A model generated the notes under the pieces. It did no database searches and was not told the DNA's origin. It saw nothing but the letters and a program-made list of their open reading frames with translations. Of a stretch of DNA of 64,000 bases, positions 139-50,269 are shown piece after piece. The position numbers and the translations under genes were made by a program. The DNA is from Ruditapes philippinarum. Taxonomy: Eukaryota. Where the stretch lies: assembly GCF_026571515.1 (NCBI RefSeq), contig NW_026860350.1, forward strand, positions 124,001 to 188,000. The letters are read 5' to 3'. Each line of letters begins with the position of its first letter. Position 1 is the first letter of the stretch.

Positions 139-198
139 CTGAAGCTTATTATAAAAGTGCTCGAATTCTTCCAATTTTTGAAAATTGTAATCAGACAT
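139..198 (-). CDS. Candidate alternative first coding exon of an antisense gene (MSDYNFQKLEEFEHFYNKLQ)
   Basis: ATG, 20 codons, then CAG|GCAAGTAT (consensus GC-type donor); phase 0. Confidence 0.45.
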
Positions 199-1431
199 AT
201 ATATATGATTTAAGGGGAGGTTGACAAGCCCATAAGAATAATAAGTCCATGAAATTTGTAAGGAACATCTGATGCCCCTGAGATGTTGATAGAGATTCAT
301 GTTTCAGTGATAGGGAGGCAATATCTAGAATATTAAAGTAGATATCACAAAAGATTGTCCTCGCAGGGTAGAAAGTTAATGCTTTGGAAATGGAAGGGTA
401 ACAGACTGGCTGCATTATATATACAAAATTCCGACAAAGATCATGGCAAGCGTTCAATTTGGTGACATTCAGTCTTGTTGAGTAGACCTATTAACATTAT
501 AAAATTGTCTGATTTGATTCCATCGATTTTTCCCGTTTAGAGGAAATACAGGTTTATATTGAAATTTCATTTAAGGAAATGGAAATTTGGAATTTGCATT
601 TATAAAAGTTAAAACAAAAAAATTAAGAACGCTTTTATTCCCTGCCCATTTGAATTCTGATAGCATGTGTTCTTTAATGCAAATACGTTTTTTCATAGGA
701 AAAATTGTCACACATTAAATTATAGTGTAGAAATATTAGTGAATTTTACTCCTAAGAAGTGAATAATTGGAAACTAGTAACTTTTTTATAGATTGCTAAA
801 TACACAATAAAGTGACAATATTTGACTAAGAGGTCAGTCATTTTGACAGAGGTACTGTTTGACTATCCAATATTCTATTTTGATTTCTTGGATGGAGGGG
901 GTGAGGGAGTTGGGTTACTTGATTTTTCTGTAAGAAAATGTAAACTGGTTGTAAAACTGAAAATAGAAACAGTGACAGGGTTAGAGAAGAAGACACTAAA
1001 AGCTCAATGAAGATTGAGATATGAGACAAGGAAGCTGTTAATTAAAGGTTCATGGGAGTAAATTCTCCCTTTTTCTCTGACAGCTTACAATCTAATATAT
1101 AAAACTGCAGACATTCTTTATTTGCACATTAATGCTTGAAAGAGCCTGTAGGCAGGATAACATCTGTGTTTTGCATATACATTGATTTATTTATGCTGAA
1201 TAATGTGATGTAATCGAGAAGAGAATAATTTAATTCTAACCTAGTGATTTACATATTTTTTTGCCCTGAAATTCAAATTGCTGTCTTGCTATTATGGGTA
1301 GGCTAAACAAAAGCTATCATTGTATGTGATTTATGTATGTAATGTCTGTAGTGAAGACTTTTATTTTTGCCATATGATATAAGTTCTTGACCTAGTTAAT
1401 TTTCAGTAGGTTTAGGCTGTTTTATAAAGGA

Positions 1432-1790
1432 CTTGTTTTGCTCACAGGCTGCACAAAGTGTCTAGTTTTGCTCTCAGATAGCACAAAATGTATTGTAATG
1501 CTCTCGGGCTGCACAAAGCTTCTTGTTCTGCTCTCGGGCTGCACAAAGTTTCTTGTTCTGCTCTCGGGCTGCACAAAGTTTCTTGTTCTGCTCTCGGGCT
1601 GCACAAAGTTTCTTGTTTTGCTCTCAGGCTGCACAAAGTGTCATGTTTTGCTCTCAAGCAGCACAAAGTGTCTTGTTTCACCTTCAGGTAGCAGAAATGT
1701 CTTGCTTATCTTTCAGGAAGCACAGAGTGTCTTGTTTTAAACTTGGGCAACACAAAATGTCATTTTTGCCCTCTTAGGCTGCGCAGTGTC
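1432..1790. repeat. 30-bp minisatellite (CTCTCGGGCTGCACAAAGTTTCTTGTTCTG)
   Basis: About 11-12 tandem units with a homogeneous core at 1501-1620; explains the overlapping repetitive ORFs. Confidence 0.95.
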
Positions 1791-2482
1791 TGATATTGCT
1801 CTACAAAATTCACAATGCTGAACAAAAGTTGTGTTGGTTTTTTTGTGTGCTTAAATGGAAATGAAATCTTTGCTTGGAGACTTTAAAATCCACATAGGAA
1901 ACATAAATTTTAGGGCAACATCTTTTCCATCTTAAAATGGAGGTTTTATGGTGTTTGTATGAGATATTTTCCACTAATGCATTGTAATACATGTTGTCAG
2001 AGAACTTCAGAGACTCATTATCATGATATCTTGTATGCAAATAGTCTCAACACCTTCATCATAGAATATCTAGATTTGAAATATTTGGCGCATAGTGAAA
2101 AAAAAAGGTTTAGTTGAAATATTTAGATAAAAACTGGCTGTTTTAAATGATAGGAGCAATAATGGTCATTTTGAACTCTTGTTGAACAGACCCTGTATTT
2201 TTTCAGTTATTGCAATTTTATTCAGATTATCACCAATGATAACAATTTCAGCAATTACTACTAAGTACCTTCAATGTTTATTTATACATGATGTTTATGA
2301 TAAACTGTACCTTGTATGTATATATATCAATGAGAGGTGATGGTATAAAACATGAATGTATATATCATAATCTCCTGAATATTTTCTTTAAAAGATTTTT
2401 TTTATCACCTTGAGACTGTGAAGGTCATATGGTGAATAGCTTAACTTGTAAAGAAAATCTGTATGTGCTCTTGTATGAATTA

Positions 2483-2699
2483 CAGTGTAAGAAACGACTA
2501 GGCTGGTCGGACTACCAGATTGGAATATTCACTAGCCCAAAAGACATTTCACTAGCACAATTCATTTGTTCAAAACAGTTGTTTATATTGCCTCTGAAAA
2601 TACAGTAGCCTGGTCGGGCTTGTTACTGTGAAAAGTTGGTAGCCCGAGGAGAAATTTAGCAGTCAGGGGCTATAGGACTACTGCTAATTTCGAACACTG
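2483..2699. mobile_element. Small MITE with CAGTGT...ACACTG termini
   Basis: Imperfect TIRs (cagtgtaagaaa / tttcgaacactg), flanked by direct repeat gaatta; CpG-retaining. Confidence 0.6.
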
Positions 2700-2777
2700 G
2701 AATTATGTCAGGCATGAGTTGGTAATGTTTAAAACCACCAACCTTCCATTAATTAGCTGGACAATTAATTGCTTTAC

Positions 2778-2972
2778 CCAGAATTCATAGTCTCCAATGG
2801 TTTTAAATCCACTGATGGTGTGGAGCATGTAATTCAGTGTGTTAGGGTCAGCTTGTCTGTCACTCAATAAGTCATTAAAGCTACGGTATATGTTCATTGA
2901 ACTATTTTCACTAAATAAAATGATTTCTTCTGCCAAGTTTTGTGAACCTGAGCCATCAATGTAGGTGATCAT
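2778..2972 (-). CDS. Candidate alternative first coding exon (MITYIDGS...GDYEFW)
   Basis: 65 codons to TGG|gtaaag, phase 0. T-rich acceptor (caaaacag|) places the exon start at 3052. Confidence 0.4.
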
Positions 2973-3476
2973 TGTAGTTATTTTAAGTCTTGAAATGTTG
3001 TGAACTAATCAGGTGAGCTGTTTTAAAGTGCTGTTCACTGAGGGATGCTAACCTGTTTTGCAAAAAAAAAGTAAGATGGTTGTTTATTAGTACTATCTCA
3101 GACTGAAGGTAACAAGTCAGGTAACCAGTCTTATCTGATATGATGTAAAAAGGAGGAAAAAAACCCTCAGATTAATTAGTTTAGTAGCATCTGGCATAAT
3201 CATATTAACCTTGTGAAAGATAAAGATCAAAGACACACTCCTATAGAAAATACCTTTAAAAAATCTGATATATCAGAAATTGTTAAACTAAAAACAATAT
3301 TATTACGGGAAGACATTAAGATCCATTTAACAGGTACAGTGAAACTGAAATATTGAAATTTATATTCAAGTTTTTACAATGTGAATTTAAAGATGCCGTT
3401 AATGTACTAAAATTTATATTTTTCTTGTAAGGAACTAAAAACTCAAAAGGTTATTTAAGAAAGATTGTTTGAAACG

Positions 3477-3832
3477 GTATATAGAGGATATTGAATGAGT
3501 GTAAGTTTAATACTGAATTTATTGCACGAGTTGAATAAAATTATTTCATGCGAGCCTCTGGCGAGCATAATATTATTTTATTCGACGAGTTCAATAAATT
3601 CAGTAATGAACTTACACGAATTTAATATTCCATTTATCACATACCTAAAATAAAGAACGTTTAAAGTGAAATAAGAGTCAGTTTTCATTGACGCGCCTAT
3701 AGTATAACGCTACATTTAGCGCGTCTTTACACTATATTTGTATAACGCTAATGACGTCACGTCAAAATATATGCACGGCCGTGCAATACCATATTTACGG
3801 AGTCGCAAAATCGGCACAGGTGTGTGATAAAA
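3477..3832 (+). mobile_element. Dispersed ~360-bp non-autonomous element with internal palindrome, copy 1
   Basis: Highly similar to 55546-55914; internal inverted repeat at about 3500-3617. Confidence 0.85.
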
Positions 3833-6800
3833 GGACATATTAACTATTTTAGCAAACTGTTATTTTGATGATTTGGTGACAATACAGGACAGTAGGGCTG
3901 TTTAAAATGTAGATCAATAGTTGGTGAAGTATAGAGATTGATGGGGTTTTAAAACAGAGAGATATGTGATTGATCTAGAGAATTAATTGGTCTACAGGAC
4001 TGTTCTGGCATTACCTGATCAGGTTTCTATATTCATGTGTCTTTTGAAATGTAATGGTTTTAATATGGAGGGCTTGTCAAAACATCCCTGATACAATGAA
4101 ATTGAATGGTGAGGGCTGGTGACTGCAGTATTGAGGCATAATGATATTACAGAAACTTATCTTGAGGACTGGCTCGATTGCACTGTTGAGGTTATGAAGT
4201 TAAAGAAACTCAGGACTGTTCCAACTCTGATAGCCTATAGAAGGGTAGTGTTGAATATTGTCATTATAATGTTGAACAGGTGATCAGATCTGCTAACCTG
4301 TTCATATGACAATTAAACCATTTTAGTGTTCACTCACTTTTTTCTTAATGCTGATTTCTAAGCTAGGTATGGTCTCAAACAGTAGATAGTAGGCTGGCTA
4401 AACTGTCTAAACATGACTAAATTATTCAGTATATTATAAAAGACTATATTACCTATAGCTTAATGTCAGCTTTATCAGGGTCAGACTATATATCTATTCT
4501 CTTATATTAAAACTATATAAAAAGGTCATATATGCCATAAAGATCTCATATAATGGTCATTTTACAAATTTCATTTATCATATAAAATTTCCATATATCA
4601 CATACAAATTTCATAATATATCATACAAATGTCATAATATCGTATACAAATTTCATAAATAGATTTCATATATCATAATACAATTTTCATATATCATATA
4701 AAAAAAAAGATAAATAGATTTCATATATTATATAAAACTTTCATAATATTATATCGTACCAATTTCATACATCATATCCAGAGTTCATATGATGCCTACA
4801 TGTACATGTTTTATATATCATGTAAAAATTTCTTATGGAACTTGCACATCTGAATTTCACAATCATGTAATATACAAATTTCACCAAACTGTGTCATTCT
4901 TTTTTCAGCCTCGCTTTTATTTTGACACTTCTTAATGTCAACAATTGATAAATGTGTAATTTAGCTGATAGCAAAATATAGTATGGTTAAGTTTCAGCAG
5001 ATTTCTTTTTGAATGGTTTTATTTGATTTACTCAGACACAGACATGCAAACTTAATTTTATTATAACACAAGAGGCTTAATTTCACGTCCCCAGATGGGT
5101 GTCTCCACTTTGATTTATGTTTTAATTTTGTGTACTTTTTGGGCACTTTGTCAAGTTTTGTATGGTACATAGGGAGCATGTTTTGCACATATTGCTGTCA
5201 TAATATATCAATAATATCCAGTGGTAGAGAAACTGTATTCTATTAAATTGCTAGGTATTCAATTTGCCTATCTTAATATCATATGTTTATATAAAATGCC
5301 ATCTGATTGGGAAAAGCCAAGTTTTATTGTAATAGTTACATTTACTTTTCAGCCAACAGCAAATTGATATTTTTGTTTTTATCTGTATAAAAGTTTAAGA
5401 TTTATAGGATAAGGTTTTTTCTATACATTATGCACATGTTGTTTACACAAGGAAAATCTGGAACTTCTTCAGAAAGGTTTGTTTATGCGTTTTGAGAAAC
5501 AGATTTTAAACATGGTAAATGCACCATTTCTGACAAAAGCATGGAATTAAAACAGGTTGCGCCTTTTCCAGTGCAGACAGTACATTATATATAATGTGTA
5601 AATTATAAAGTTTGTGATTAGAAAGTATTAGTTAAACTCATGACACAATGATCATTGTTTTAGTTACATATATGGTTGAAGAACAACCATTTGCTGAATT
5701 TATCATATAAGTAGATTTAGATGTTAGTGTAAAGGTCTTGGCCATTCTACTTCTACAAGGTGATCAAGGCATTACTCACTGGTCAGCAATAAAACACAAC
5801 TTTAAATCTTAAGGAAAAGTGCTTGCTGGCCAACAGACACTACAATCATGGCTTTTGTTTTGGCCAAAATACATGTAGGAATCCGAATGACTCGTGGATT
5901 CAATTGAAAATGATTTAAATGGGGTGTCTGAGAACGAATTGCACATTTGGTTATTCGTTGCAGCCTTTGGTTTATTTGCAGTAGCATAGATTAAATAAAA
6001 TATATGAAGAGGTTGATGCTGGGTTTTGAAGATGACTAAATGTATTGAGATTTAAGTACATTATTTTTCTCTGGCTTTCTGTATGCTTGTAAGCTATGTT
6101 CTGCGGTAAGGAAAATCTAGTCATATATTCAAATATGGCTATAATTGTATTCAGAGATGGTGCTTTATTTTTCTGCATTTTGATATAAACTAATAAAATC
6201 AATTTTTGTATTCAATTTCTTTTGTATAGTGGCAATAAAATTTGCTTTTTATATTTCATAACAGATGTAAGAGATGGCATAAATGAATATTTTATCTTAG
6301 AGTAGGAGATTGGGTGGAAATATGATGGTATATTGAATATATACTAATATTAACGCTAAAAAGGAACTTTGTTCTAATGATTTCAGATCTTATTTCAAGC
6401 ATTTCCATGAAAATCTAGGCATTATTAAGTGATGTCTAATAGTTATATGTTTGTATTTAGGTCAGTAAGATAAGTTATATGAAGGTTACAATGACCTCAA
6501 CTCATTAAGCCTGATGAGGTGATATTTGTTTGTATTTCATTGGAATGAAATATCGAGCATGCCTGATTGTAATATGAATATAAAAAAATTAAAGTTTTAG
6601 TTAGTTAGAGGTCGGGTTAATAGCATTGAAGAGAAAATATTTTCATTATGATTGATTTAAAAAAAACAACACAAGTTTTATGTGTTACAGTAAAATATCA
6701 CAAGGAAAATATGAATTTTATTTCACTAATTAGATTTTCACATGTGTGAAGTATTATAATTATATTTCTTATAAAAAAAAAGTTGTGTGATAATTCAAGC

Positions 6801-7010
6801 TAAACAAATCCTCAACAAAGCTACATTGTTGTATTCATGTTCTCAATAAATACTTAAATTCTTTTTTTCTTTTCTAAAAGTAATACATAACATCAGAATA
6901 GTCTAATCAGAGGTGGTTTTTATAAATAATATGAAAAATATCAGATACATTTACCTAGAAAGTTGAGAAAATAAAATTGAAATCTATGAGTCGACTAATT
7001 CATGAAAAGG

Positions 7011-9027
7011 GTCTGTAAATGAGAGATTAAAATACCAGACTTAGTTTTATTAAGTCTGTAAATGAGAGGTGAAAAAACCAGAGTCAGTTTTATCGAGACT
7101 GTAAATGAGAGGTGAAAATACCAAAATTAGTTTTATTGAGTCCGTAAATGAGAGGTGAAAATACCAGAGTCAGTTTTATCAAGTGTAAATGAGAGGTGAA
7201 AATACCAGAATCAGTTTTATTGAGTCCGTAAATGAGACTCTGGAGAAAATACCAGAATCAGTTTTATAGAGTCTGTAAATGAGAGGTGAAAATACCAGAA
7301 TCAGTTTTATTGAGTCTGTAAATGAGACTCTGAGGTGAAAATACCAGAATCAGTTTTATAGAGTCTGTAATTGAGAGATGAAAATACCAGAATCAGTTTT
7401 ATTGAGTCCATAAATGAGAGGTGAAAATACCAGAATCAGTTTTTAGCTCGACTTTTCTATGAAAAGGGGAGCTATCCTACTCGCCCCGGCGTCGGCGTCG
7501 GCGTTAGCGTTAGCGTTAGCGTTGGCGTCACACCTTGGTTAAGTTTTTCGTACCACCCCACTTTATTTCAGAAGTATTACAAGTATGGCTTTGAAACTTA
7601 CCATACTTGTTCACCATCATAACCTCCATCTACAGACAAGAGTACATAACTCTGTCAAGGTTTTTGACAGAATTATGGCCCTTTTTTGACTTAGAAAGTG
7701 TATTGAGCTTGGTTAAGTTTTTTGTACCACCTCACTTTATTTCAAAACCATTGGAGGTATTGCTTTGAAACTGACCATACTTGTTTACCATCACGACCTT
7801 CATCAACAGACAAGAGGACATAACTCTGTCAAGGTTTTTGACAGAATTATGCCCCTTTTTGACTTAGAAAATACATTGAATATGGGTAAAATCCACTTAT
7901 TGCCTTAACCCTTTGAGATATTGCTTTGAAACTTTTAATGCTATTTCACATCATTACCCCCATCTGTACGCAAGAGAAGGTAACTCTGTCAAGGATTTGT
8001 TTTAAAAATTAAGGCCTTTCATCGACTTAGAATCTTGGTTAAGTTTTTAGTACCAGTCCACTTTTTGACTGAACTGTTTGAGATATTAATTTGAAAGTTG
8101 GAATACTTGTTTACAATCATGATTCCCAAACATGGGCAGGAGAAGGTAATTCTGTTAAGGATTTTATTTGAATTATGGCCCTTTTTGACTTAGAAACTCA
8201 GTTAAGATTTTCATTCTTGTCCACTTGTTGACTTAACCATTTGAGATATTACTTTGGAAGTTGGAGTTCTTATGTGCCATCATGAGACCTATCTGTAAGC
8301 AAGAGAAGATAACTCTGTGAAAATGTTTCTTGATTTGTACTTAGAAATTCCTAGTTAAAGTCTTGTGTGCCCTTAACTGTCAAAGTTTTGTTTTATAGGC
8401 AAGCACTAAAAAAGTCGAGCGCGCTGTCCTTCTGACAGCTCTTGTATAGAGTCTGTAAATGAGAGATGAAAATACCAGAATCAGTTTTATTGAGTCCTTG
8501 AATGAGAGGTGAAAATACCAGAATCAGTTTTATAGTCTGTAAATGAGAGATGAAAATACCAGAATCAGTTTTATTGAGTCCATAAAAATGAGAGGTGAAA
8601 ATACCAGAATCAGTTTTATAGAGTCTGTAATTGAGAGATGAAAATACCAGAATCAGTTTTATTGAGTCCATAAATGAGAGGTGAAAATACCAGAATCAGT
8701 TTTATAGAGTCTGTAAATGAGAGATGAAAATACCAGAATCAGTTTTATTGAGTCCATAAATGAGAGGTGAAAATACCAGAATCAGTTTTATAGTCTGTAA
8801 ATGAGAGGTGAAAATACCAGAATCAGTTTTATTGAGTCCATAAAAATGAGAGGTGAAAATACCAGAATCAGTTTTATAGAGTCTGTAAATGAGAGGTGAA
8901 AATACCAGAATCAGTTTTATAGAGTCTGTAAATGAGAGATGAAAATACCAGAATCAGTTTTATTGAGTCCATAAATGAGAGGTGAAAATACCAGAATCAG
9001 TTTTATAGAGTCTGTAAATGAGAGGTA
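7011..9027. repeat. 43-bp minisatellite (AATACCAGAATCAGTTTTATTGAGTCCATAAATGAGAGGTGAA) split by a 1-kb insertion
   Basis: Tandem units at 7011-7440 and 8446-9027, in the same register across the insert. Confidence 0.95.
7441..8445 (+). mobile_element. Non-autonomous Helentron-like element (HINE / pearl-CvA-type architecture)
   Basis: 5' subterminal gctcgactttt matched by 3' aaaagtcgagc; (GGCGTC/AGCGTT)n microsatellite; about five 160-170 bp internal repeats; 3' hairpin gctgtc-cttct-gacagc; inserted in a T run. Confidence 0.85.
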
Positions 9028-10119
9028 ATGGAAGGTGCAACATCCTCTCAACACACACTAGCACCAGCTATAGCAGTATTCAATATAAACACATATACTA
9101 TAATAGACCAGAAAATTATATCATGAACACAAAAGCCTTCAGTTGAGCTCTGATAATATCTTAATGGGTAAATGGTAACTACAATTAACAAATATATTTA
9201 TACATATATTTATATTTTATTGAGACTTTAATATGTAAATCAATTTTTGTGCAGGGAATGTGGACTTTAATGAGAATTATTCGATTCATTTGAGAATATT
9301 TTGAGATGGATTTATTTCCTCTCTCTCTGCCTTTATTTTTACGAGTGTAACATTAATTTAAAATTTCAGTTTCTTCCATGTCTGTATTCATTTTGTTAGA
9401 ATCTCATATTATTTATTTTTTTGATAATAACAGAGAATTGGTGAAGCAGAGAAAATAAAGACTTTATGTATGTGTCTGAAAATATCCTCAAAATCATTGT
9501 TGTATTCACATCACCGATCTGTAACTCTGTTACTGAAATATCAAGGGATTTTATAATGGTATTCTCAGATCTTTTTTTATCTAAATTTCAATCTTCTGGG
9601 ACAAATATTGAACATATCTGAAACTGACTACATGTAAAGTCACACATATTGTTGATAAGAGATCATACATCAATTTTCAGTGTGATATTTTTTGTTTTCT
9701 CAGTGTTATACTATGGTAATGTATATTGTCAATTAAGGAATGTATATTGTCAATTAAGGATCAAAGCAACATTAAATGTATGCAGCAGTTAGTCCTGGAA
9801 AAATAATACTGTGCCCCATGAGCTATGTTAATTTGAAGTAGATGTAGTAGTCGGATGTAACTATGAACATAGTACCCCTGGTGGTGACAGTAGGGATGGG
9901 GAACAAAGACCTTTAATTTTGGATTTTCATACCATCAAATTGTCTGACTGCGTAGCAAGATTGGGATGGTATCAGATAAGTAATACAGAGGTTGCTGGTT
10001 TGATCCTTGGGTGAGTGACAATTGATCTCGAACATTCAGGTCATTGTCTCTCACTGCAGTTTCAGAAATCATTTGGAATTAGCAGTCAGTGGAGAATTAG
10101 GTCATAATAGGTTATCCAG

Positions 10120-10747
10120 CCCTACTGAAAAATTGACTGTCAATCCCACTGGGATGAGGGTGGGATCCCAGTGGAATTTTAATTGGGATCCCAGTGGGAT
10201 CCACTGGGAAAATTGGTCGGGAGTGGGATCCTGACCAAATTTCCCAGTGGGATCCAACCCTTATCCCAGTGGCAAAAAAAATCATTAAAGTTAATAATAT
10301 ATGGTTTTAAAGTGTATATTATGCATAATTTTCTTATCTTTCTGGATAAAAGAAATTTCCAATGAATATTTTGCAAATGCACCTATTTTTGAATAATCAA
10401 AATTTCGGACATTATCAACTATGACAGAGATTCTTGGACCATGTACATATTTTAGGACCAGAATAATCAAATGATTTCCTTTAACCTTATAGAAGGGACA
10501 ATTCATGAACCCTGTGTGATTCATAAGAAGCTCATCAATTTTCTGGCATTAATCTAATTGATAAGGATGGGATCGCACTGGGAAATCTAAGTGGGATTGA
10601 TATGCCATTTCACTGGGATCCCAGTACCATTATCCCACTGGGATTACTTTACATCCTGCTTATATGATGATATCCCACTGGGATTTGATCATCCTACCAG
10701 GATCCCAGTGGGATCCGGGTCAGATCCCAGTTTGATTTTCTGTAGGG
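10120..10747. mobile_element. Non-autonomous DNA transposon, CCC...GGG termini, CMC/EnSpm-like
   Basis: TIRs ccctactgaaaa / ttttctgtaggg, 2-bp AG duplication, many subterminal CCCACTGGGAT/ATCCCAGTGGG motifs at both ends. Confidence 0.8.
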
Positions 10748-11153
10748 AGGAAAGTCTGTTTGGTGGATCTACCGCTATAGTTTGACCAAAATTTAATAAT
10801 GTGTTACAATTGACAAAAAAGAAACAGAAAAACAAACAAGTATGTGAAATTGTAAAAAAATATGATTATATATGCTCTTGAACTTTTGTGTTGCTTGCAA
10901 TAGTAGTTTTACAAGAAACTTAAGCTTTTGTTGAACTTTCGTGACAACTTGAGATATTTATGATTGCCCTGCAGTCTCAAGATTTTCTTACAATATGAGG
11001 TCTCTATTATAAATTATGACATCTATGCAGAAAAATCTCACTTGTATTGTTAGACAAACAAAGAAGTTTCTATTTTAGTCACGCTTTCATAATTTCCATT
11101 TACAGGGGCAATACTCTTCCACTCGAATGCCAATAACTTGTCTACGATTTCAC

Positions 11154-11249
11154 CATTTTTACAACCCATCTGACTGATTTGTTTTTAAGATGTAAGCTTG
11201 ATGTGGAATAAAATTCTTCAGTAGCAGTAAAAGATCCTGCCATGGACAT
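11154..11249 (-). CDS. Candidate alternative first coding exon (MSMAGSFTATEEF...VVKM)
   Basis: Strong acceptor ttttcctttttaccag| (exon start 11296); weaker donor ATG|gtgaaa; phase 0. Confidence 0.25.
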
Positions 11250-13553: not shown

Positions 13554-13616
13554 AATTATGATACAAGTGAATCTAAACTACGTAGAGAATTTGAAGTATA
13601 TGGACCTATACGAAAA
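13554..13616 (+). CDS. SNRNP70: U1 snRNP 70 kDa, RRM exon ([21 protein letters not shown])
   Basis: ttttcag acceptor and gtaagt donor; 63 nt, phase 0/0. Peptide is nearly identical to the U1-70K RRM segment [20 protein letters not shown]. Upstream exons are not in the window. Confidence 0.97.
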
Positions 13617-28439: not shown

Positions 28440-28615
28440 TCTGATGATAATCATTATGTTGATAATTCATCATAACATTGATAATTAATCATTGTATTGA
28501 TAATTAATCATTGTATTGATAATTCATCATTGCATTGATAATTCATCATTATATTGATAATTCATCTCTGCATTGATAATTCTTCATTATAACATTGATA
28601 ATTCATCATAACTGA
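28440..28615. repeat. ~19-20-bp degenerate tandem repeat (TTGATAATTCATCATT...)
   Basis: Recurring ttgataatt. Confidence 0.75.
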
Positions 28616-29191
28616 TATTTCTTAAACTTCTTTAGACATATTGATGTAATTATTTTGAAATTTGGATTGAAGGATTTCACCAATCATCTGATAAAATCTC
28701 AATGTCTATAATGCACAGCTTTAGTGCAACACTGTTTTATCTGAATCTTATAGTTGTGTGAGTTATGAGGGTATGGCGTGGAAGCCTGCGATCTTAGATC
28801 TTGTCAAGATGTATTTATATTTCACCTCTAAATCCAATTATAGATTGATTCTGGAACTCTTGGTTTTATCTTTAATCTCAATATAAACACACTTTCCTCT
28901 GAATTGAAAGTTCGGGGAAAACAACTGCTTATTAACAGCATGTCTGTTACTTTCTAGTGATGTTGGTTTATATATGTGATATAAATGACTAGATTTTGAT
29001 AGACAGTAATCTAAAACAAAAATGATGGGATGGTTGATGGGGTGGGGTAAGGGGAGTAAAATTTTTAATTTTTGTTAATGAGTATTGTTTGAAAATACGA
29101 TAGAAGAAAAATTATTCATCCAAAGATAAGCCTGTTTAAAGATTATAGTTTGTATGTCACTGATTTGATCCCCAGCATTTCAATACGGAAG

Positions 29192-31492
29192 TGTTTGTAT
29201 AAGTATAGTTAGGACAGGTCAGTTTGTGTGAGTATAGTTAGGACAGGTCAGTTTGTGTGAGTATAGATAGGACAGGTCAGTTTGTATGAGTATATTAAAG
29301 ACAGGTCAGTTTGTGTGAGTATAGTAAGGACAGATCAGTTTGTTTGAGTATATTAAAGACAGGTCAGTTTGTGTGAGTATAGTAAGGACAGATCAGTTTG
29401 TTTGAGTACAGTTAGAACAGGTCAGTTTGTAAAAAGGTCAAGTCACTGTCATTTTGTATAAGTATAAGTTAGGACAGGACAGTTTAAGTATATTTAGGAC
29501 AAGTTAGTTTGTATGAGTATAGTTAGGAACAAGTCAGTTTGTATAAGTATAGTTAGGAACAGGTCAGTTTGTATGAGTTTAGTTAGGACAGGTCAGTTTG
29601 TATGAGTATAGTAAGACAGGTCAGTTTGTGTGAGTATAGTAAGGAACAGGTCAGTTTTATTGAAGTGAGTATAGAGTTAGGACAGGTCAGTTTGTTTGAG
29701 TATAGTAAGGACAGGTCAGTTTGTGTGAGTATAGTAAGGACAGATCAGTTTGTGTGAGTATAGTAAGGACAGGTCAGTTTGTAAAAAGGTCAAGTCACTG
29801 TCAGTTTGTATAAGTATAGTTAGGACAGGACAGTTTAAGTATATTTAGGACAAGTTAGTTTGTATGAGTATAGTTAGGACAGGTCAGTTGGTATAAGTAT
29901 ATTTAGGACAGGTCAGCTTGTATGAGTATAGTTAGGACAGGTCAGTTTGTATGAGTATAGTTAGGACAGGTCAGTTTGTATGAGTATAGTTAGGACAGGT
30001 CAGTTTGTATGAGTATAGTTAGGACAGGTCAGTTTGTATGAGTATAGTTAGGACAGGTCAGTTTGTGTGAGTATAGTTAGGACAGGTCAGTTTGTGTGAG
30101 TATAGATAGGACAGGTCAGTTTGTATGAGTATATTAAAGACAGGTCAGTTTGTGTGAGTATAGTAAGGACAGATCAGTTTGTTTGAGTACAGTTAGAACA
30201 GGTCAGTTTGTAAAAAGGTCAAGTCACTGTCATTTTGTATAAGTATAGTTAGGACAGGACAGTTTAAGTATATTTAGGACAAGTTAGTTTGTATGAGTAT
30301 AGTTAGGACAAGTCAGTTTGTATAAGTATAGTTAGGACAGGTCCCAGTTTGTATGAGTATAGTAAGGACAGGTCAGTTTGTGTGAGTATAGTATAGATAG
30401 GACAGGTCAGTTTGTTGAGTATATTAAATACAGGTCAGTTTGTATGAGTATAGTAAGGACAGGACAGTTTGTATGAGTATTGTTAGGACAGGTCAGTTTT
30501 GTATGAGTATAGTAAGGACAGGTCAGTTTGTATGAGTATAGTTAGGACAGGTCAGTTTGTATGAGTATTGTTTAGGACAGGTCAGTTTGTATGAGTATTG
30601 TTAGGATAGGTCAGTTTGTATGAGTATTGTTAGGACAGGACAGTTTGTATGAGTATAGTAAGGACAGGACAGTTTGTATGAGTATTGTTAGGACAGGACA
30701 GTTTGTATGAGTATTGTTAGGACAGGTCAGTTGTATGAGTATAGTTAGGACAGGTCAGTTTGTATGAAGTATAGTAAGGACAGGACAGTTTGTATGAGTA
30801 TTGTTAGGACAGGACAGTTTGTATGAGTATTGTTAGGACAGGTCAGTTTGTATGAGTATAGTTAGGACATGTCAGTTTGTATAAGTATAGTAAGGACAGG
30901 ACAGTTTGTATGAGTATTGTTAGGACAGGACAGTTTGTATGAGTATTGTTAGGACAGGTCAGTTTGTATGAGTATAGTTAAGGACAGGACAGTTTGTATG
31001 AGTATTGTTAGGACAGGACAGTTTGTATGAGTATTGTTAGGACAGGACAGTTTGTATGAGTATTGTTAGGACAGGTCAGTTTGTATGAGTATTGTTAGGA
31101 CAGGTCAGTTTGTATGAGTATAGTAAGGACAGGACAGTTTGTATGAGTATTGTTAGGACAGGACAGTTTGTATGAGTATTGTTAGGACAGGTCAGTTTGT
31201 ATGAGTATAGTTAGGACAGGTCAGTTTGTATGAGTATAGTTAGGACAGGTCAGTTTGTATGAGTATAGTTAGAACAGGTCAGTTTGTATAAGTATAGTTA
31301 GGACAGGTCAGTTTGTATAAGTATAGTTATGACAGGTCAGTTTGTATAAGTATAGTTAGGACAGGTCAGTTTGTATAAGTATAGTTAGGACAGGTCAGTT
31401 TGTATAAGTATAGTTAGAACAGGTCAGTTGGTATAAGTATAGTTAGAACAGGTCTGTTTGTATAAGTTTAGTTAGGACAGGTCAGTTTGTGT
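29192..31492. repeat. 29-bp minisatellite (GAGTATAGTTAGGACAGGTCAGTTTGTAT)
   Basis: About 75-80 units; variant blocks repeat at higher order. Confidence 0.97.
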
Positions 31493-32483
31493 ATCATTAT
31501 TAATGTCATGTCATTTGTTGCCTTTGGAATATATCAATGAAACAGTGAAAGTTTTCATGGTGTAATCATACTGTTACAGTTTTCCTTAAATAAAAAGAAT
31601 GTTTGACAATAACAACAAGCATCTACCATTTCTGCTTTGTAAGGTTGAGTTGACAGTACAGTTTATGTGACGATTGGATAAGAAAATGTTTGGTGACTTT
31701 GCAACATTTGGAAAAAAAAACCAACATACATGTATTTTCAAATTATATGTTAAAAAGTAAGTTCTCTTACAAGTCCAGAATGAATGAATTCTTTTAACAA
31801 TCATTTTATAAATTCTTTAAGTTATGCAATATTAACACATGAGGTACTTCATCAGCATTAAGTTAACAAATTTTAGATGCATTATATAAATGTTTACCTT
31901 TGGAATAGATCAAAACCATTAAGTTCCCAGCAACACTTAATTTCTGTACTTAACAAGCAATTAAATGCAAATAAAATGTTCACACATTTGATAGAAATAT
32001 TACCTGTAACTAAATAATCCACTGCACTAGTCTTATAGTAACTAGTAAAAAAAAAAGAGAGAGAAAATGTAGAAATACACAAATGTTTCTTATCTTTTGC
32101 ACAACTTTTTACTCCTTTAATAGTTTTTTTTTGCAGAATATATCAGTAAAATTCCTTACACATTTAACAGTCTTGTTTAAGTCCAGTTTAAGAGAAGTAT
32201 TTCCAAAAAAAAGCACCAGTAGTGTAACCGTAGATATTCACAAGATCAGCATTATTTGTTGCGGAACACAAAACATGATATAATTTATTGTTACACCATT
32301 TCCTTTTTGTACGAGAGAGTAAGTTCTTGAGACCAGTGACAAGCAATATTTTTATTATATTTTTCTTCTCGTAACAAAAAAAAGAAAAGAAGTAATTTGG
32401 GTATCCTGCGAGACACGCCAAATTTGGTTGAATTGGATTAGAAAAGGAAAGAGCATGAATAATTGAGTGAATTTATAGCGTAC

Positions 32484-32540
32484 CTGCGTCAATAATTCCG
32501 GAGACTTGTAGCGGTAGGGAAGGTGGTGTAAGAAACACAT
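32484..32540 (-). CDS. Candidate alternative first coding exon (MCFLHHLPYRYKSPELLTQ)
   Basis: caaATG start; CAG|gtacgc donor, phase 0; CpG-rich surroundings. Confidence 0.5.
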
Positions 32541-33549
32541 TTGGATTAATAATTTAAGGCTGTTGTCATTAAACTTGTTAATAAGTCAGCATGTCACCTA
32601 TATTGTTTGATTAATCATATTGTCTTTATATTGTTGCCATTTCTATTTATGCCCATTTCTCTTTTAGAGGGAAGTGGCATTTGTAGAGTGGAATGTTGAG
32701 TTGTTTCATATAGTTCTGATTGCTGTCTACTAGAAAACCAGCAATTTTTTAATAAGTCTCTACTATTTTTCTCTAGCAGTCTCATCTTATATAATCCAAT
32801 TATGATAGTGTTGTTGCAGAGCATATCAGATATAGTTGATACTCCAGGGGGAGGGGACACAGCTAGGGTACATTTTCCAATTTTAGAAAACTCCAGGGGG
32901 AGGGGACGTAGAGCACAGGGTACATTTCCCAATTTTAGGAGTGGGGGGGGGGGAACATTTTGAATTGGTTTGACCTTTACATAATATTGTTACAAACAAT
33001 TTCAGTAATTTAGCAAGGCACAGTTTTCAAATTTTTGAAGACAGATGGCCTATGATAAAAAATTTCTGCAGCATTGTTGGATTCAGGAATTGCAGTTGTA
33101 GACAAAAGTTCTGTAGATTTTGGGCTTAATACAGTGGCCAAATCTTTGCTCCTTTATAACTAATGACAAGGTCTTATACTGCTGCCACTGTCAGGACAAA
33201 TCCTTGAAAATCTAAAGTAAGGCTGCTTCTTTCAAAATTGAAAATTTATTGTCTTAATAAAGTCCTAGTGATTGTTTTCAAGTATATTATTAAAACTGCG
33301 TGTCTGGTTTGTATAGATGTCTTCTGTCTATCCAATAAGCAATTACGCTGCGAGGCATTGCTTCAAACGTCTCCATCTTCATTACTTGTGAGTATACACA
33401 CAGAGAAATGTAATCAATTCTCAAAATCAGTAATTGATTGTAATTTAAATTCAACCTTGCCGTTTTCTTACTGAAGATATTGTCTGTGTATTATACAACA
33501 CAGGATTTAAGATGGATTCTATTGAATACAAATATTTTTTTAAACATTT

Positions 33550-34270
33550 GGGAGCATACCATAAATGTTCCCTTGTCAGTTTTATGTTACTTGGTAGACA
33601 AATTGCCCATGGCCAGAGGATCAACCCTTTTCAGGTCATGAGGTCAAAGGTCAAGGTTAGAGTGACACCATGTTAAGTTGTTGAAAGAGAGAAATAAGAC
33701 TGAGTTTATAAAACATGGTAATGACATTAACTATTGTGAGTTGATGACCTCTATTAATTTTAAGGTCATTAGTCACAATGACACTTTGTGTTAAGTCCTT
33801 GTCCAATAAATCACTTGAGAAGTTATAAGCCCAATTTTTTAAGAAATTCATTACAGATATTGTCCATGGCCATCAGATAACCCCTAGTGTTATTTAGGTC
33901 ATAAGGTCAAAGGTCAGTGACACTTCTTTATGCAAAGTTTTTGTCCAAAATCCTTGTTCAATCAATACCTTAATAAGCCAAAGATTGTGAGACATGGTAG
34001 GTTCCTTTCCCTGATGGCTTTAAGGTGACCTCTAGAGATTTTTAGGCCATTAGGTCAAAGGTCAAGGTTAGAATGACACTGTGCGTAATACCCTTAATAT
34101 ATCAATAGCTTGTGAAGAAATAGAACTTGAAATACTGTTATTACTTACTAAAACAATGTATAACACTTGACCTATGGGTATATTTTTGTATAGTTGCATA
34201 CTGTCTTGACTGATACTTGTCTGGTAACCAAGTTCTTCTTATTAAGCGCCAGTCTTGAAGACAATTTATA
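33550..34270 (+). mobile_element. Decayed Helentron/satellite-type element remnant
   Basis: Periodic aggtcaaaggtca(aggt) motifs at about 33641, 33904 and 34051, with similar flanking sequence. Confidence 0.5.
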
Positions 34271-36911
34271 CAAATATTTTTATTCTGCAACATATGTGCA
34301 TCTTAAGTTTTTATATTTGTTTATGACATTGTTGTTAAATGTCATTAATTTATGACAATTGTTGTCTACATATTGTATAACATAACAAGGATATCTCTGA
34401 TTGTTTCCAAATTCTTCAATATACCTGGCTTAATGCTAACAATACCAGGTAAAATATCAGTCTATAATCTAAACCAGTGTTACAAGGTTCTAGTGCTAGA
34501 TATTCCTGTTTCCAGGTAGTTTAATATGTGTTTATTATAGTCAGTTTTAAATTGTTTTTTCCCTTTTTTTACATTTGGGGATCCTTTAATTTTTTGGTTG
34601 ATTTGCAATAGAAACCCCAAATTTCCATGTTTGACCTTTTATTAATTCAGACATTTAATTTTCAGCAAGAAAAAATTTTTAAAGGGTTTTTAGTTTATGT
34701 AAAACTTTTAATTTTAACAAATAATTTATTAAATTGTTTAAAAATTTAGGAAATTTCGGTGTGAAAGAAATATTTCCTTCTTTTATTTTAAACATTGTCC
34801 TTATACAAAAAACCAAATTTCCTTAATTTAAAATTATTATTTTAAAAAGGGAAATTTAATTGCTCATTGTGCAATAATGTGCCAAAAAAACAAACTGCAT
34901 TGCAGTTACCTTTAGACCAACTTATATTTTAAAGGATGGGCCATAGTCTGTGTTAATAACACATTACCACAGTTACAGAAATATTTCTTTAACTAGCGTG
35001 CATACTTGTTATTGAAAGATTTATTACAAGGTGTGGAAGTGCAGTTGAGAGAGTTCACAAAATAAATTTTTAAATGTTTAGTCTGGAATTGCTGATGAAA
35101 GTTTGTAAGATAGATGTCAACTTTTCTTACATTGTGCCTGTTGTTAAGCTATAATATTGTAGTGTGTTTGTTTTGTAATAGCTGCTCTCTCTCTGTTTAT
35201 TTAATGTCTGCACAATTCATTTATCTTGATTATCCTGAAAACCCGTTACTAATTGAAAATTGGATTATTCCATTTTGCTAATGGTTCTTGTCGAATAAAT
35301 TTTGTTTATTTTTGTACAGTTTGAAAGATTTGAGTGTTACTTAAAACCCATAAAGAAGTTGCCATTACTCGTAGAAGATTTCAAGTGTATCCTGTCCTAT
35401 ATTTGTTTGAAAGAACTTAATTTATGTTCAACTAAGTGTTTAGAAAATGCAAAGAAGAGATAGTCTGTATGTAAAAGCTTGTGGGAATCCTAAAAAAGGT
35501 TTATTGGTTTTAAAGACCCAATTTTTTTTTCCCTTTTCAAATTTTTGCTGAATTAAAAGTAATGTTTCATCACCCAAATTCATACAAAAAAAACCCCCAA
35601 ATTATAGATCCCTCCTTTTTCCTTTTATTTTTTAAAACAATGATTTAACTGCAAATATTGACTTGTGTTCTTTTGATGGCGAAATTCGTATTGTAATCCT
35701 TTAATCTGATAATCCAAAGACATGTAGGATCTATGTATCTCAAGAATTGAGTTTATTCCACAATGCAGATTTATTGTCTGAATTTTTGATCAAGAGAAAA
35801 ATTAAACCCATCACAACATAAGATGCGTAGAGACTTGTTTATTTTCATAAATTTTTGTTCATGTTGCAATATAATCATAATGATATGATGAATGCTGTCA
35901 TATGAAAATATGCTGGTTGAGTGGATGATGTATTTTTATTGCACTGAAGCTTGGTACAGTCTGGTAAAAATGCGTATTGTAGAATGTTCTCTTTTTTTGT
36001 CAGAAGCCTGAATAACTTTAGAATGTTTTATTTGTGTACTCAGTACAGTTCATACTTGGGAACTTTTTTCAATGATCTAGTGGGAGATTTTTCTTCATTT
36101 TAGAATTTGCAATAAGCAAAGAAGGAAGTTCTGTCATCAAAAAAGAGGGAGATTTCTTTAATTTGTGAAAATACCCCTTATTTTAAGAAAAATCTTTGAA
36201 TATATGGCCGCTTAAAGTGGGAGAGTTCACATGAAAACAGTTATTAGAAACAGAAATTTGCATGGAACTGAGATTTGTGCATAAATTGTCAAATTTACAG
36301 CTTGAAAAAAAAAAAGATAAAAAAGAGGTATCATTTCGGTGGTGTTGTGGTGTATTAAAATACTGTTTTGGTGATGATAGTGATGGCAATAATAGTTTTG
36401 TCATGTCCATTGTCCTGATGATGATGACTGATAATTGTGATGATTATAATCATGTTAGTATGACAACAAACATCCCTGACTTATTTCTGTGTTAGAAATT
36501 CCTCTTCTTCATCTTTATTGGTTCTTATGTAACTGACAGAGAATCTTTCTGTCTGTGTGATGAAAGAAGACTGTTAAAAGTTATATACCTTTGAAGACAG
36601 GAAATATAATTTTATTACTGGTTTTCTATATCCTCAGATAAATGAAATGTTAAAGGTCAGTGTGATTATTGCAGGGCAAGTGTGTGAAGTAAAAAAAAAC
36701 AAGTAAATCAATGCTTGTTTTTCTATTGCTTTTTATACCACACTGTTCTGGCATTGTAAAAGTGATGTATCAACTTCCCAGCTTAAATACTGGTGGAGCA
36801 ATTCCACAGATGCTCCTTGTAAAATTATGTCAGTCATGAACTGGCACCACCTAGGATAAGGTAGTGGTATAGAAAATGAGATATATAAACTTTATGATTG
36901 TATAATTTCAG

Positions 36912-36993
36912 ATAAAGATGTTGAGTGACAAGATAAATGGTAAACCACGAGGTTATGCTTTCATAGAGTATGAACATGAGAGGGACATGCACT
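36912..36993 (+). CDS. SNRNP70: U1-70K RRM exon with RNP1 ([27 protein letters not shown])
   Basis: tttcag acceptor and T|gtaagt donor; phase 0/1. RNP1 motif RGYAFIEY; equivalent to human exon 7. Confidence 0.98.
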
Positions 36994-37144
36994 GTAAGTA
37001 TATATATCATCATACTGTACTGTTCTCTCACTGGCAGTACGGATGTTTCTTATATGGTTCTTTATGGTTACTATCCTTACAGAGGGATATTTCCTTTTCT
37101 TTTTTAAAAAAAAACGTCATTACTATATTAGATTGTCAATAAGA

Positions 37145-37280
37145 TTTTATATGATTATGATAATAATGATGATAATAATGATAATAATAATAAGATTTTT
37201 ACGATGATAATCATAATAATCCATAATGATAATGATAATAGTAATAGTAATGATAATAATGATGATGATGGTAATATAAT
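37145..37280. repeat. (AAT/GAT)n microsatellite
   Basis: Trinucleotide low-complexity run. Confidence 0.85.
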
Positions 37281-40200
37281 GGAGCGATATATTTGTAAAA
37301 CAAATTCAATAAAAACTCAATAGTCAATAAACTTATTTTTTGCCTGAGTATAAAAAAAGTCATCACCATTATAAAGAGTAATTCATTTAACAGATCATAA
37401 ATTATTTTTGCTAAAATATGTTTTAAAATAACTATGACATGGTAAAATTTAGTATCATAAAAATTAACTGAATGTTCTTTAAATAAAGTGATAGCTGAAG
37501 ATTCAAAATATGAGCTATTATTTTCAACCAGTAAATGTAAAATATGAACCAAGCGCTAGGTGAATGTGAGTATAAAAGTTGATAAGTGAACAAATTTTAA
37601 CTTAAATTAAACTTACTTCATTGAAATCTAGATAGAGATAAATGTAAAGTAAACTTAAAATAAGTTGAATAGTTATTAGTGTTATTGTAGCTATAAATTA
37701 GTTTTTTTTAAATAATTAGCAAAGAATGTAAGTGAAAGTGTCAAGTTTGAAACTAGTTTTATCTGGTATAATGTTATTGTCAGACTTGTACATTATGTTA
37801 TGTTGGCAAGGTTTTGACAGTAATTGTTGCTCAGGTGAACATTCTGTATAAACAATTGTCTCTTCTTTTCCACTTACAAACTATTGAAAATATGTGTAAT
37901 GACGCATGTAGTAAAGAAAACCTTTGAAATGAAAAAAAAACCTACCACCCTTCCTGAAAAACATTTCCAAGAATCATCAGAGTAGTAAATAAAATAAGGA
38001 AATGGAAGTATAATTAACAATTGTAAACACATGGAGAAACATTTTATATAACAAACATTCGTCATTGTGTACTGATTTATGAAAGTACATCATAACTAGC
38101 AGTGGGATAATGGATAGGATATCTCCTCTTTTACACCTGGACTGAGGTCATGGCCATGTTCTCTTAAGTATACAAATTATAAAAATCATAGTAATGACTA
38201 TATTTAGTAAGTTTAACCAAGAAATTTTATCTTTTCATTATTGAAATTGACACATTAAAAAAGTGGGAATTGTCAGAAATCAGCAGTAAAGCATAACTGG
38301 CAATTAAGTTAAGTAACTAGACATGGAATGGCAGTTAATTAGTGTTATATTTGTTACTGGTAGACTACTAATGATAACATAATGTTACATTGTCTGATGT
38401 ACTAAACTAGAATATTTGTAATGGAGACATGCACTCATAATTTGTATGGAATTCTTTTGTAATAATTGGAATTGTTATGAATAGAAAGCAAATCTGGTAT
38501 TCAGCACTCAAATGCACTGTATAGAATAAAACAGAGAAGTTATGACATGTTAGTCCAAATTCTGTATGATTTTGTTAATGCTGTGGTAGCTTTTGTACTT
38601 TAAAAGTAAATCTAAAATAATCTCCAAATCACAAGTACTCTTGGTGTTCTTGGAATTACAGCCAGACATGTGTTTTTTCTAAAGGCATTTGCACTATACA
38701 GCTGAACAGATTTGATTAAGTTTTTTCATACTTTCTGCCTTCTTCCATGATCAAATTGGTATTGCCCAATTTATTTATAAATTTTATTAGTGGCAAGGTT
38801 AACTCTATATTCTGTGTACAGGATATGGTATAAAGGAGCATCACTATGAAGTTGGCAACACTACACTCTAAAAGAATTTGTGCAATTACTTCAAAAACTT
38901 AAGATAATTAATTTAAGCAGTCGTGCATCTGTAAAACTAATGAGAAAGTTCTGAGAACAATTCTATGATACTTCTATAGTTACATATCTTTGTTGACCTT
39001 TATCTCCCAAAGTTGATTTCCTGTATAATGATATATATGTACATGCAGTAATAATGGTCTCTGTTTCAATAATTTAGTATGAAACATTACTCTAAAAAAA
39101 TTTAAAAAGTAAAGATTTCTCTAAGGTGGTCTGTAGATCTACATGTCTGTTTTTCTAAAAAAAAATCTTTACAGGTGTTTGATTATTTCTGAACCTTGTC
39201 AATTTTAGTACATTATTTTTAATTGTTCACCGAATCACAAAAACAGAAATCATGCTCCAAATCAAAGAATGTTCTGGAAAATGTTTGGAGCAATGGAACC
39301 AGTCTAAAAGAGGTGGTCTAGAATGGCAAATATTTGACTGGTTATGTTTTCAAGCAAAGCTTTATTATTAAAGCTGTAAAGGATTTTGTTACTGGGCTTG
39401 CTTGAGCTTCTTTACAGTTAAAAGACATGGTGCCCTGACCATTATCATTATTAACTGAATAAGCTTTGTTTTAAAATGATATTTTATAATAAAATTAAAA
39501 TGATATTTTATAACGAAATTTACAGATAAAATTTATCGGTTGTTTGGTATCTTTATAAAATCTTCATTTGAAATTGAAATTTTTATAAAATTAAGGTTTA
39601 TTGAAGAAATACTAATTGTAAATAGTGAAGACCCCTTAATTGTCTATTTAAACTGTTTTGATTAATATAGCAATAAAATAACATTTTAATGTTTTACACT
39701 ACTTGAGTTAATATACCTCCATCTATTATAAAACTCTTTAAGATTTAGTTTTACCTGTATATATCTGCTAAATTGTTACCTATAATGGAATGATGTACCA
39801 GTACATAATAGGTGGTCTTATGTTCAGATTCTAGGGTGGTTGGTCATCATGTATTGGTCAGTATTTTGGATATTTTAACAACAACACAAGGTTGACTTGT
39901 CTACATTTTTGGCCTGTAAAAATCAAGGTGACAATTGATTTTGAGAAGAAATCATTATAAAGATTTGCTCAATTAGTATTAAGCTCTTTTTTAACAGCAA
40001 GAATGGGCAAGTTGACACTTGGTCTCAAATTCATGGTGGGTTCACAGAGCAAAATGTTAAATTAAATGTTGTCCTAAAACTAAAGGTTAGTTATAGGTTG
40101 GTTTGATCTGGACCTGGTAAATTTTTAAAGTTGATGTTACAAATTTCTTAACTATCAGAGATTACCATAATGGTGCTTTTGCTGACTATATCAATTAAAT

Positions 40201-41373
40201 TGAAATTGATGCTGTGTGTAAATTGTATTTATGTCAATTTGAAAAGATAAAAAACAACACACACAACTAAATGTTTCTCCTAAATGCCTTTATGCTGTTG
40301 CCTTTCTTCATTTTAATGTTTTCTTAAATGCAGCACAATTTAAGATATTTGTTTTATAGGGCGTTGTTACTGCCTAACTGTTTAATTTTATTGTAGTACC
40401 TACTGAGCTCTGACTGAAGTCTTGGCTCCAGATGAGCTTTGTTCATTCTTTCATTTATCAGATGGTGAAAAAAATAGAGAGAGAAAAAAGCAAGAACATA
40501 GTTCCTGTATCCAAAAAGTGTAACATAAAAAATAAACTGAGGAGATAAAAAAAAATTGGGGGAAATGTTAAAAAAATGGTTTTGATAAGGTTTTTTTTCT
40601 CATTGGATTTACTACTTACATTTTTTATAATTCAACAGTTAAGGTAAAATGCTTCAAACCGTATAAATTTAGTTTGTTATCGTATAAATAAGTTAAAATA
40701 GTATATAACAATATCTAAATTGGTCATAATAATTTAGCTGTGCCATCTAAATTAGTCTCAATTAGTGATAAATAATCTAGATCCTTGTCTTATTCTGGTG
40801 AGTTTTTCAAAAAATTATTGTAAAAAGACAATAGTTTAGCTGAAAGCAAAATTGTCAGACAAGACTGGTGGGCACATTCTGTACAGTGTGACAAGGCATT
40901 ATACTGTTGTCTATAGTTCTTGGTTTGGTCATTGTACTTAACCTACACCCTGCTGGGAGTGACTGATTCTACCTATGTGACCAGTGCAGACCATGGTCAG
41001 ACGGTACGGTACATACATGCTGTCTGATAATGGTCTGTACTGTTACATGTTCAATCAATACATATCTTGATATTTTCCCCTAAAGATTATAGAAACATTT
41101 TATGAAAATGTTCTTAGAATAAAAATATTTTAAGGCTGAAAATATTATATAGATGATAAATTTTGAAATTTTTAGCTAGAAACTTTAAAAAAATTTTTTT
41201 TTTTACTGGACACCTGAAATGGATGAATTTGAAATGTAATAGTCTTGCATAACTTATTTACTGTCCTATCGGAAAGAATAACATACTTTAACTTCAGTTT
41301 TAAGTATGAGGTTTGAAATGTATTCAGTGTCATGATGTGTGTTGTATTTAAAGAAATATAAAGTGTTACATAC

Positions 41374-41430
41374 CTGCTGGTCAGAATGAGTATGCTGGGA
41401 ACACGAAGCAAACTCCACCTCAAACATCAT
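41374..41430 (-). CDS. Candidate alternative first coding exon (MMFEVEFASCSQHTHSDQQ)
   Basis: 19 codons to a strong CAG|gtatgt donor, phase 0; GC content above flanks. Confidence 0.5.
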
Positions 41431-50212: not shown

Positions 50213-50269
50213 TTATAATCCTTATAGCACTCTAGACGGCGATGTTGAATAGAATCTTTATTATTACTT

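Follow-up and report, generated by a model that had tools for sequence, protein, structure and literature searches.

This report concerns a window of 64,000 nucleotides from the clam Ruditapes philippinarum (NCBI RefSeq assembly GCF_026571515.1, contig NW_026860350.1). Window positions 1-64,000 correspond to contig 124001-188000 on the + strand and contain no ambiguous bases (N); positions marked "contig" refer to the whole contig. The + strand gene in the window is SNRNP70 (U1-70K), whose coding exons we letter A to I. We believe, with a probability of about 0.93, that the minus-strand gene is a Shaker-type (Kv1) voltage-gated potassium channel interleaved antisense with SNRNP70: Shaker exons sit on the opposite strand in SNRNP70 introns A-B, B-C, C-D, D-E and E-F, and spliced Shaker contigs were found. 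Three window segments (24804-24616, 18107-18048 and 41430-41374) are proven to be genuine exons of this Shaker-like Kv1 gene. An earlier sequence-only reading had claimed a minus-strand gene overlapping the splicing gene, and the Kv1 exons do lie antisense in the SNRNP70 introns; the 'orphan' antisense exons are assigned to a neuronal ion-channel gene and are not noise.

The channel gene and its verified first exons

The core of the channel is an open reading frame (ORF) of 516 codons at contig 83144-84691, minus strand, just upstream of SNRNP70 and head to head with it. Its T1 domain matches Pfam BTB_2 (PF02214, E 1e-26, residues 67-157) and the Kv1.1 T1 structure 1t1d (E 1e-55), and the frame also matches Ion_trans (PF00520, E 1e-51). 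The translation carries an arginine-repeat S4 and the pore signature TMTTVGYGDM and ends in ETDV. In the PDB ranking Drosophila Shaker is the best match (E 7e-219) and Kv1.2 the next (E 2e-207), whereas Kv3.1 (E 2e-85), Kv4.2 (E 3e-82) and Kv2.1 (E 6e-81) are far weaker, so that the core is nearer to Kv1/Shaker. A word search started from the core ORF retrieved Kv1 proteins of molluscs, among them a KCNA2-like protein of Mactra antiquata with 96% identity. The core exon itself is a single exon at contig 83144-84586, minus strand (T1 domain, S1-S6, pore and the C-terminal ETDV); its phase-2 acceptor, ttccag/G TCT TTT CCA (..SFPKL; the slash marks the splice site here and below), lies about 105 nt into the open frame.

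The sequence-only reading had predicted a shared exon with a phase-0 acceptor to the left of the window. Inspection of the adjacent sequence located it 37 kb to the left, at contig 86976-87365, minus strand, antisense in the first coding intron of SNRNP70 (A-B). This exon 2 has 390 nt (130 codons), a phase-0 acceptor tttcag/CCT AAA GAT (PKD...) and a phase-2 donor CAG AG/gtaaga, the codon AGG being completed by the first G of the core. It adds a long linker with a basic RIRRSKS stretch and a PPPY motif, which are possible regulatory sites. With exon 2 alone as the query, the word search gave no R. philippinarum transcript fragments, the only matches being ab initio single-exon predictions of other bivalves. 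Exact mapping of the RefSeq Shaker-like isoforms X1, X2 and X3 (XP_060607547.1, XP_060607548.1, XP_060607550.1) gives the same order in each: a variable start, then exon 2, then the core.

Seven minus-strand segments of the window had been put forward as up to seven interchangeable first exons. All of them are present, each starting with ATG, staying open and ending at a donor on a codon boundary; six donors are GT, and 198-139 uses the rare GC type (CAG/gcaagt). The segment 24804-24616 (63 codons, MSYNLSGVQ...AAQDSDE, donor GAG/gtaaag, phase 0) is an alternative first coding exon that occurs once in the genome, and its peptide is identical to residues 1-63 of isoform X1. The segment 18107-18048 (20 codons, MAMRVSTSIAPGQSLQETSQ, donor CAG/gtaaaa, phase 0) is another, identical to residues 1-20 of isoform X2; the N-terminus of Mya arenaria isoform X1 aligns to window 18113-18048 (tblastn E 3e-8, 55% over 22 aa). 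The two peptides are therefore N-termini of isoforms of one protein, as had been expected. The third alternative first coding exon, 41430-41374 (19 codons, MMFEVEFASCSQHTHSDQQ, donor CAG/gtatgt, phase 0), has the best donor in the span, with 8/9 consensus positions; it is absent from the three R. philippinarum RefSeq isoforms returned.

Splicing was examined in Logan contigs of the public runs X1, X2 and X14 and in raw reads of run X22, over contig 86040-88040, i.e., the stretch between SNRNP70 coding exons A and B; the runs were found by searching public data with exon 2. In runs X1, X2 and X14 the contigs extend over exon 2 and not over the flanking intron on either side, breaking at both splice sites; with the intron as a silent control, such exon-only coverage points to complementary DNA (cDNA) and not to DNA. 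Downstream of exon 2 all three runs read into the first bases of the core exon.

Upstream, the 450-nt contig of run X2 matches window 41377-41403 exactly, followed by the shared CTG of 41374-41376, and is joined to exon 2 and runs on into the core. The loose end of an X14 contig beyond the exon 2 acceptor equals window 18051-18080 exactly, so that this run uses the donor at 18048; the 4-codon variant 18107-18096 was not seen. Run X1 continues above the acceptor into contig 89256-89285. A second continuation in X14 is a two-contig consensus with a reported agreement of 0.57, which we resolved by assuming alphabetical tie-breaking and taking the 24616 exon as one member. In the 1.4-Gb genome the pattern derived for the other member is matched exactly at a single place, 114683-114712, which lies on this contig and on the same strand. 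If at each position the alphabetically first letter of window 24618-24647 and contig 114683-114712 is taken, the consensus is recovered at 30/30 positions, and the predicted agreement is 17/30 = 0.567; since the consensus splits exactly into these two sequences, the donor at 24616 is in use. One X14 contig stops at the exon 2 acceptor and three others overlap it by 30-31 nt each, and branching precisely at the acceptor is the outcome expected of de Bruijn assembly for alternative first exons.

Five distinct upstream sequences thus meet the exon 2 acceptor in three runs, in addition to the start of RefSeq X3. The donors at window 18048, 24616 and 41374 all reach contig 87365 in the transcript contigs, which bears out, for these three, the proposal of interchangeable N-termini spliced onto one shared acceptor.

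Several points weigh against this interpretation. The RNA nature of runs X1, X2 and X14 is a guess, cDNA being deduced from the exon-only coverage and the exact joints, and the strand of the transcripts is deduced from the GT-AG orientation. The raw reads of X22, a run labelled RNA, cover intron and exon alike and give no evidence of expression. The exon at contig 114681, joined to exon 2 in X14, has no in-frame ATG within its open stretch, and it may be internal or non-coding. Finally, some of the "first exons" could be first coding exons behind an upstream exon of the 5' untranslated region.

Concerning X22 itself, this 2026 run labelled RNA-Seq shows even depth over intron and exon and many chimeric reads whose ends start with GATC, as would be expected of a proximity-ligation (Hi-C-like) or DNA library; the RNA label may be wrong.

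Chance level and the remaining candidates

The ATG-to-donor pattern by itself is not above chance. Among the 832 minus-strand ATGs in window 139..41430, 226 have an open phase-0 GT[AG] donor, and phase-1 and phase-2 pairs are as frequent, which confirms the caveat made from the sequence that short ATG-donor pairs arise by chance. These counts, together with the lack of a Pfam match for any candidate peptide, favour the view that all seven segments are accidental ATG-to-GT pairs in AT-rich introns and that there is no antisense gene. We consider it extremely improbable, however: in transcript contigs three segments run directly into a conserved coding exon, and two of these match RefSeq isoforms residue for residue. 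It is refuted for three of the seven and survives only for 11249-11154, 2972-2778, 198-139 and perhaps 32540-32484.

Donor quality and composition are more informative than the open frame. About ten distinct phase-0 candidates in window 1..48000 pass a donor filter of at least 7/9 consensus positions, including 41430-41374, 18107-18048 and 32540-32484. Against a background of GC content 0.31 and a CpG observed-to-expected ratio (o/e) of 0.28, four segments are GC-rich: 24804-24616 (0.51, 10 CpG), 18107-18048 (0.52), 41430-41374 (0.47) and 32540-32484 (0.47, 3 CpG). The composition of 11249-11154, 2972-2778 and 198-139 equals the background. The suggestion that several segments are islands retaining GC and CpG accordingly stands for four of them and not for the other three. 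The case shows that GC/CpG composition lets a reading of the raw sequence pick real first exons from among hundreds of chance ATG-GT pairs.

The four candidates 32540-32484, 11249-11154, 2972-2778 and 198-139 (all on the minus strand) occur in none of the three RefSeq isoforms and in no contigs of runs X1, X2 and X14, and comparison with N-termini of other molluscs found no resemblance. Hence three of the up to seven proposed exons are proven and four are without support in the data examined. The first of the four (19 codons, MCFLHHLPYRYKSPELLTQ, donor CAG/gtacgc with 7/9 consensus positions, CpG o/e 1.06) is similar to the proven exons both in its composition and in the quality of its donor, which makes it plausible; we still regard it as rather doubtful that it is a genuine first exon. 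We read the other three as chance, because of their background composition and their weak or non-GT donors, and each of them, taken singly, is highly unlikely to be genuine. The segment 11249-11154 (32 codons, weak donor ATG/gtgaaa, GC 0.34, 0 CpG) is probably a chance ATG-GT pair, and 2972-2778 (65 codons, single copy, GC 0.37, CpG o/e 0.15) probably a chance open frame; 198-139 has 20 codons and GC 0.28.

One could still propose that all four are genuine, i.e., rare or tissue-specific first exons missed by the three runs. Sampling is indeed far from saturated, because five upstream exons came from no more than three runs; oysters have at least six such exons, and 32540-32484 is like the proven ones in GC/CpG composition and in the quality of its donor. 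Even so, the background composition and poor donors of the segments at 11249, 2972 and 198, the abundance of chance pairs and the failure to find homology with mollusc N-termini make this proposal unlikely, and we retain only the three verified exons as members of the Kv1 gene within the window.

A repeat or transposon origin of the two long candidates (24804-24616 and 2972-2778) was considered and ruled out: each occurs once in the genome, and repeats are confined to short flanking pieces. Rfam scans (gathering threshold over the whole window; E-value mode over 24300-25100) and transfer RNA scans found nothing. A further phase-0 ATG-donor candidate, MCRPAYWYLYTGGKGLSARVNRQ, was noted at window 13799-13731, minus strand, about 115 bp from SNRNP70 exon D (GC 0.49, donor 7/9).

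Extent of the array, proposed mechanism and comparison with other species

Outside the window, the start of isoform X3 is a Shaker 5' exon of 20 residues at contig 118408-118349, minus strand, 5.6 kb left of the window (exact protein mapping). The exon at contig 114681-114749, minus strand, joined to exon 2 in X14, is hydrophobic and ends in ...YAVIANILALVFWIFWSFTK/gtatgt. In run X1 the upstream exon is non-coding, minus strand, from contig 89253 onwards in SNRNP70 intron B-C; an in-frame TAG precedes the junction, and translation would therefore begin within exon 2, at MQQKSDKHK; a start of this type is also found in models of Mactra, Mya (X4) and Dreissena.

Two further starts bypass exon 2. 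The conserved first exon MATLVSAILETL (contig 86133-86167, minus strand), known from Mya X5, Haliotis X2, Mizuhopecten X2 and Mytilus X2, has a phase-2 donor that suits the core acceptor; it lies about 100 bp from SNRNP70 exon A, and its donor is the end point of a 648-nt X14 contig. The other, MEVAMMCSEG..., is a read-through start that directly adjoins the core, and it falls into the MEVAM... class of other molluscs. A regex search of the region for a WFWG-type N-terminus found nothing.

The total is at least eight alternative 5' ends across contig 84.7-165.4 kb. The array had been described as spanning 41 kb and three introns of SNRNP70; it does exist, and it is larger, extending over about 80 kb from contig 86.1 to 165.4 kb and over five introns, partly outside the window. 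The three RefSeq isoforms returned contain neither 41374-41430 nor the exons at contig 114681 and 89253 nor the MATLVSAILETL exon; the RefSeq models belong to the same gene and appear incomplete, the transcript contigs from public RNA data adding further 5' exons.

At contig 91689-91645, minus strand, there is an open phase-0 ATG-donor segment, MHSVNVGPLLKREKK/gtaaat, whose first ten codons overlap the beginning of SNRNP70 coding exon C in antisense. Its peptide is similar to the N-terminus MGSLHVGPLL of Mya arenaria Shaker X3 (tblastn E 0.12). This segment may be another first exon and a sign of conserved interleaving; the match to the antisense stretch at exon C suggests the same layout in another bivalve order.

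An overlap of up to about 80 kb with SNRNP70 and the non-coding exon at contig 89253 make it tempting to propose that the antisense transcripts are mainly non-coding natural antisense RNAs regulating SNRNP70, the open frames being incidental. We find this very improbable, considering that the segments are spliced in frame onto a conserved channel gene, that RefSeq models them as coding sequence, and that the 18107-18048 exon has a homologue in the N-terminus of Mya arenaria X1.

We therefore return to a protein-coding Kv1 gene, for which the gene identity, exon positions, reading phases and junctions have been established above, and propose the following mechanism. Mutually exclusive 5' exons are spliced in frame to exon 2, itself joined to the Kv1 core, and each of them is presumably under its own promoter. 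By analogy with Drosophila Shaker and Aplysia AKv1, the variable N-termini may tune N-type ('ball') inactivation and/or targeting in different neurons. The SNRNP70 introns may be large partly from housing the Shaker exons and their promoters, together with repeats.

The Drosophila Shaker locus produces the ShA, ShB, ShC, ShD and ShH N-termini, differing in inactivation kinetics, from alternative 5' exons. The clam gene is similar in having mutually exclusive 5' exons that place variable cytoplasmic N-termini on a constant core; it differs in its two acceptor tiers (phase 0 onto the 130-codon exon 2 and phase 2 onto the core), in the single-exon core, and in the 5' exons running antisense through SNRNP70. 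Arrays of variable first exons are also known in the clustered protocadherins and UGT1A. As in these, numerous alternative first exons of the clam gene, presumably all with separate promoters, are joined to common downstream exons; unlike in these, the clam exons encode short unrelated peptides and not paralogous domains, and they lie inside the introns of another gene.

A short variable N-terminus followed by a PKD[IL]D exon 2 is annotated in Magallana gigas in at least five variants (X2, X3, X5, X7, X8), and the same plan is found in Saccostrea, Ostrea, Mytilus, Haliotis, Pomacea, Conus, Babylonia, Biomphalaria and Mya. The proximal clam start, MEVAMM...GNGG...NSRSFPKL, is of the MEVAM... 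class mentioned above, and Aplysia AKv1, we presume, begins with a start of the same class. AKv1 (AK01a) is a mollusc Shaker orthologue whose N-type inactivation is set by the first N-terminal residues: the pore is blocked by the first five, the following nine or so serve to dock the N-terminus, and deletion of residues 2-61 abolishes N-type inactivation (PMC11639194). More generally, protostome Shaker genes vary inactivation through alternative splicing (PMC3519636). A single AKv1 isoform has been studied functionally. The clam 5' ends would offer a natural set of N-terminal variants for the study of N-type inactivation and of neuron-specific promoter choice in a mollusc.

RefSeq already contained the gene and two of its window exons, and that Shaker channels have alternative N-termini is textbook knowledge. 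What we add are the extra 5' exons seen in runs of public RNA data, a measure of how far the gene is interleaved with SNRNP70, and a hint that the arrangement is conserved; the number of 5' ends, spread over five introns of another gene, is less ordinary. Transcription from the distal promoters must pass in antisense through a splicing gene that is essential and ubiquitously expressed, over a distance of up to about 80 kb, and this passage raises the questions of transcriptional interference, of double-stranded RNA and of why the two genes stay linked.

As to the last question, human KCNA7 and SNRNP70 are head-to-head neighbours at 19q13.33; human KCNA7 is not known to have interleaved first exons. 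It is possible, and we offer it only tentatively, that the head-to-head, interleaved arrangement of Shaker and SNRNP70 is an ancient bilaterian microsynteny held by distal promoters and first exons in the SNRNP70 introns, in which case the human adjacency would be a relic. One paper places KCNA7 next to NTF4 and near LIN7B and does not mention SNRNP70 (PMC3280201). The literature search found nothing linking KCNA7 with SNRNP70 and nothing useful on SNRNP70 microsynteny. A neighbour of the Lin7 type (L27 domain), such as the vertebrate KCNA-LIN7 block has, was sought, and a match was found on another contig only.

The host gene SNRNP70 and other features of the window

The hallmarks of U1-70K are present: the U1snRNP70_N domain, the RGYAFIEY motif within an RRM, and a tail rich in Arg (RD/RS). 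All SNRNP70 exons are on the + strand. Exon A (contig 85895-86032) carries U1snRNP70_N (PF12220, 53 bits), and exons B and C are found around contig 88066 and 91680. Exon D (window 13554-13616, NYDTSESKLRREFEVYGPIRK) is the start of the RRM and is in frame with its neighbours (acceptor ttttcag/, donor /gtaagt); exon E (36912-36993) has the RNP1 motif of the RRM, and exon F (46100-46201) matches the human U1-70K PDB chains 4pkd, 3cw1 and 3pgw (E 2e-17). Exons G (46508-46747), H (47042-47242) and I (47675-47832, with the stop TAG at 47830) encode the Arg/Asp/Ser-rich tail. Introns C-D, D-E and E-F measure about 46, 23 and 9 kb, and those between exons F and I measure 306, 294 and 432 bp; these sizes agree with the earlier statement that only the introns bearing the segments are huge, the others being of 294-432 bp.

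Large tandem arrays occupy several kb of the big SNRNP70 introns, at window 29193-31490, 14600-16111, 21068-21961, 8445-9026 and 7011-7443; their units include 29 bp x 79, 39 bp x 39 and 28/56 bp x 32 copies, as well as 43/258-bp units. The strongest CpG peak of the window (19 CpG per 300 bp) is due to an element of about 355 bp at 3478-3832, which has an internal inverted-repeat structure and at least 40 listed copies genome-wide with 94-99% identity; it looks like a young repeat of the miniature inverted-repeat transposable element (MITE) type. Another CpG-rich patch, at window 23601-23900 (13 CpG per 300 bp, GC 0.40-0.48), lies about 0.7-1 kb downstream, on the minus strand, of the first exon of isoform X1. 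Downstream of SNRNP70 there are two remnants of retrotransposons without long terminal repeats (non-LTR), one at window 49817-53694 on the + strand with Exo_endo_phos and RVT_1 ORFs, the other at 59224-61319 on the minus strand with an RVT_1 ORF.

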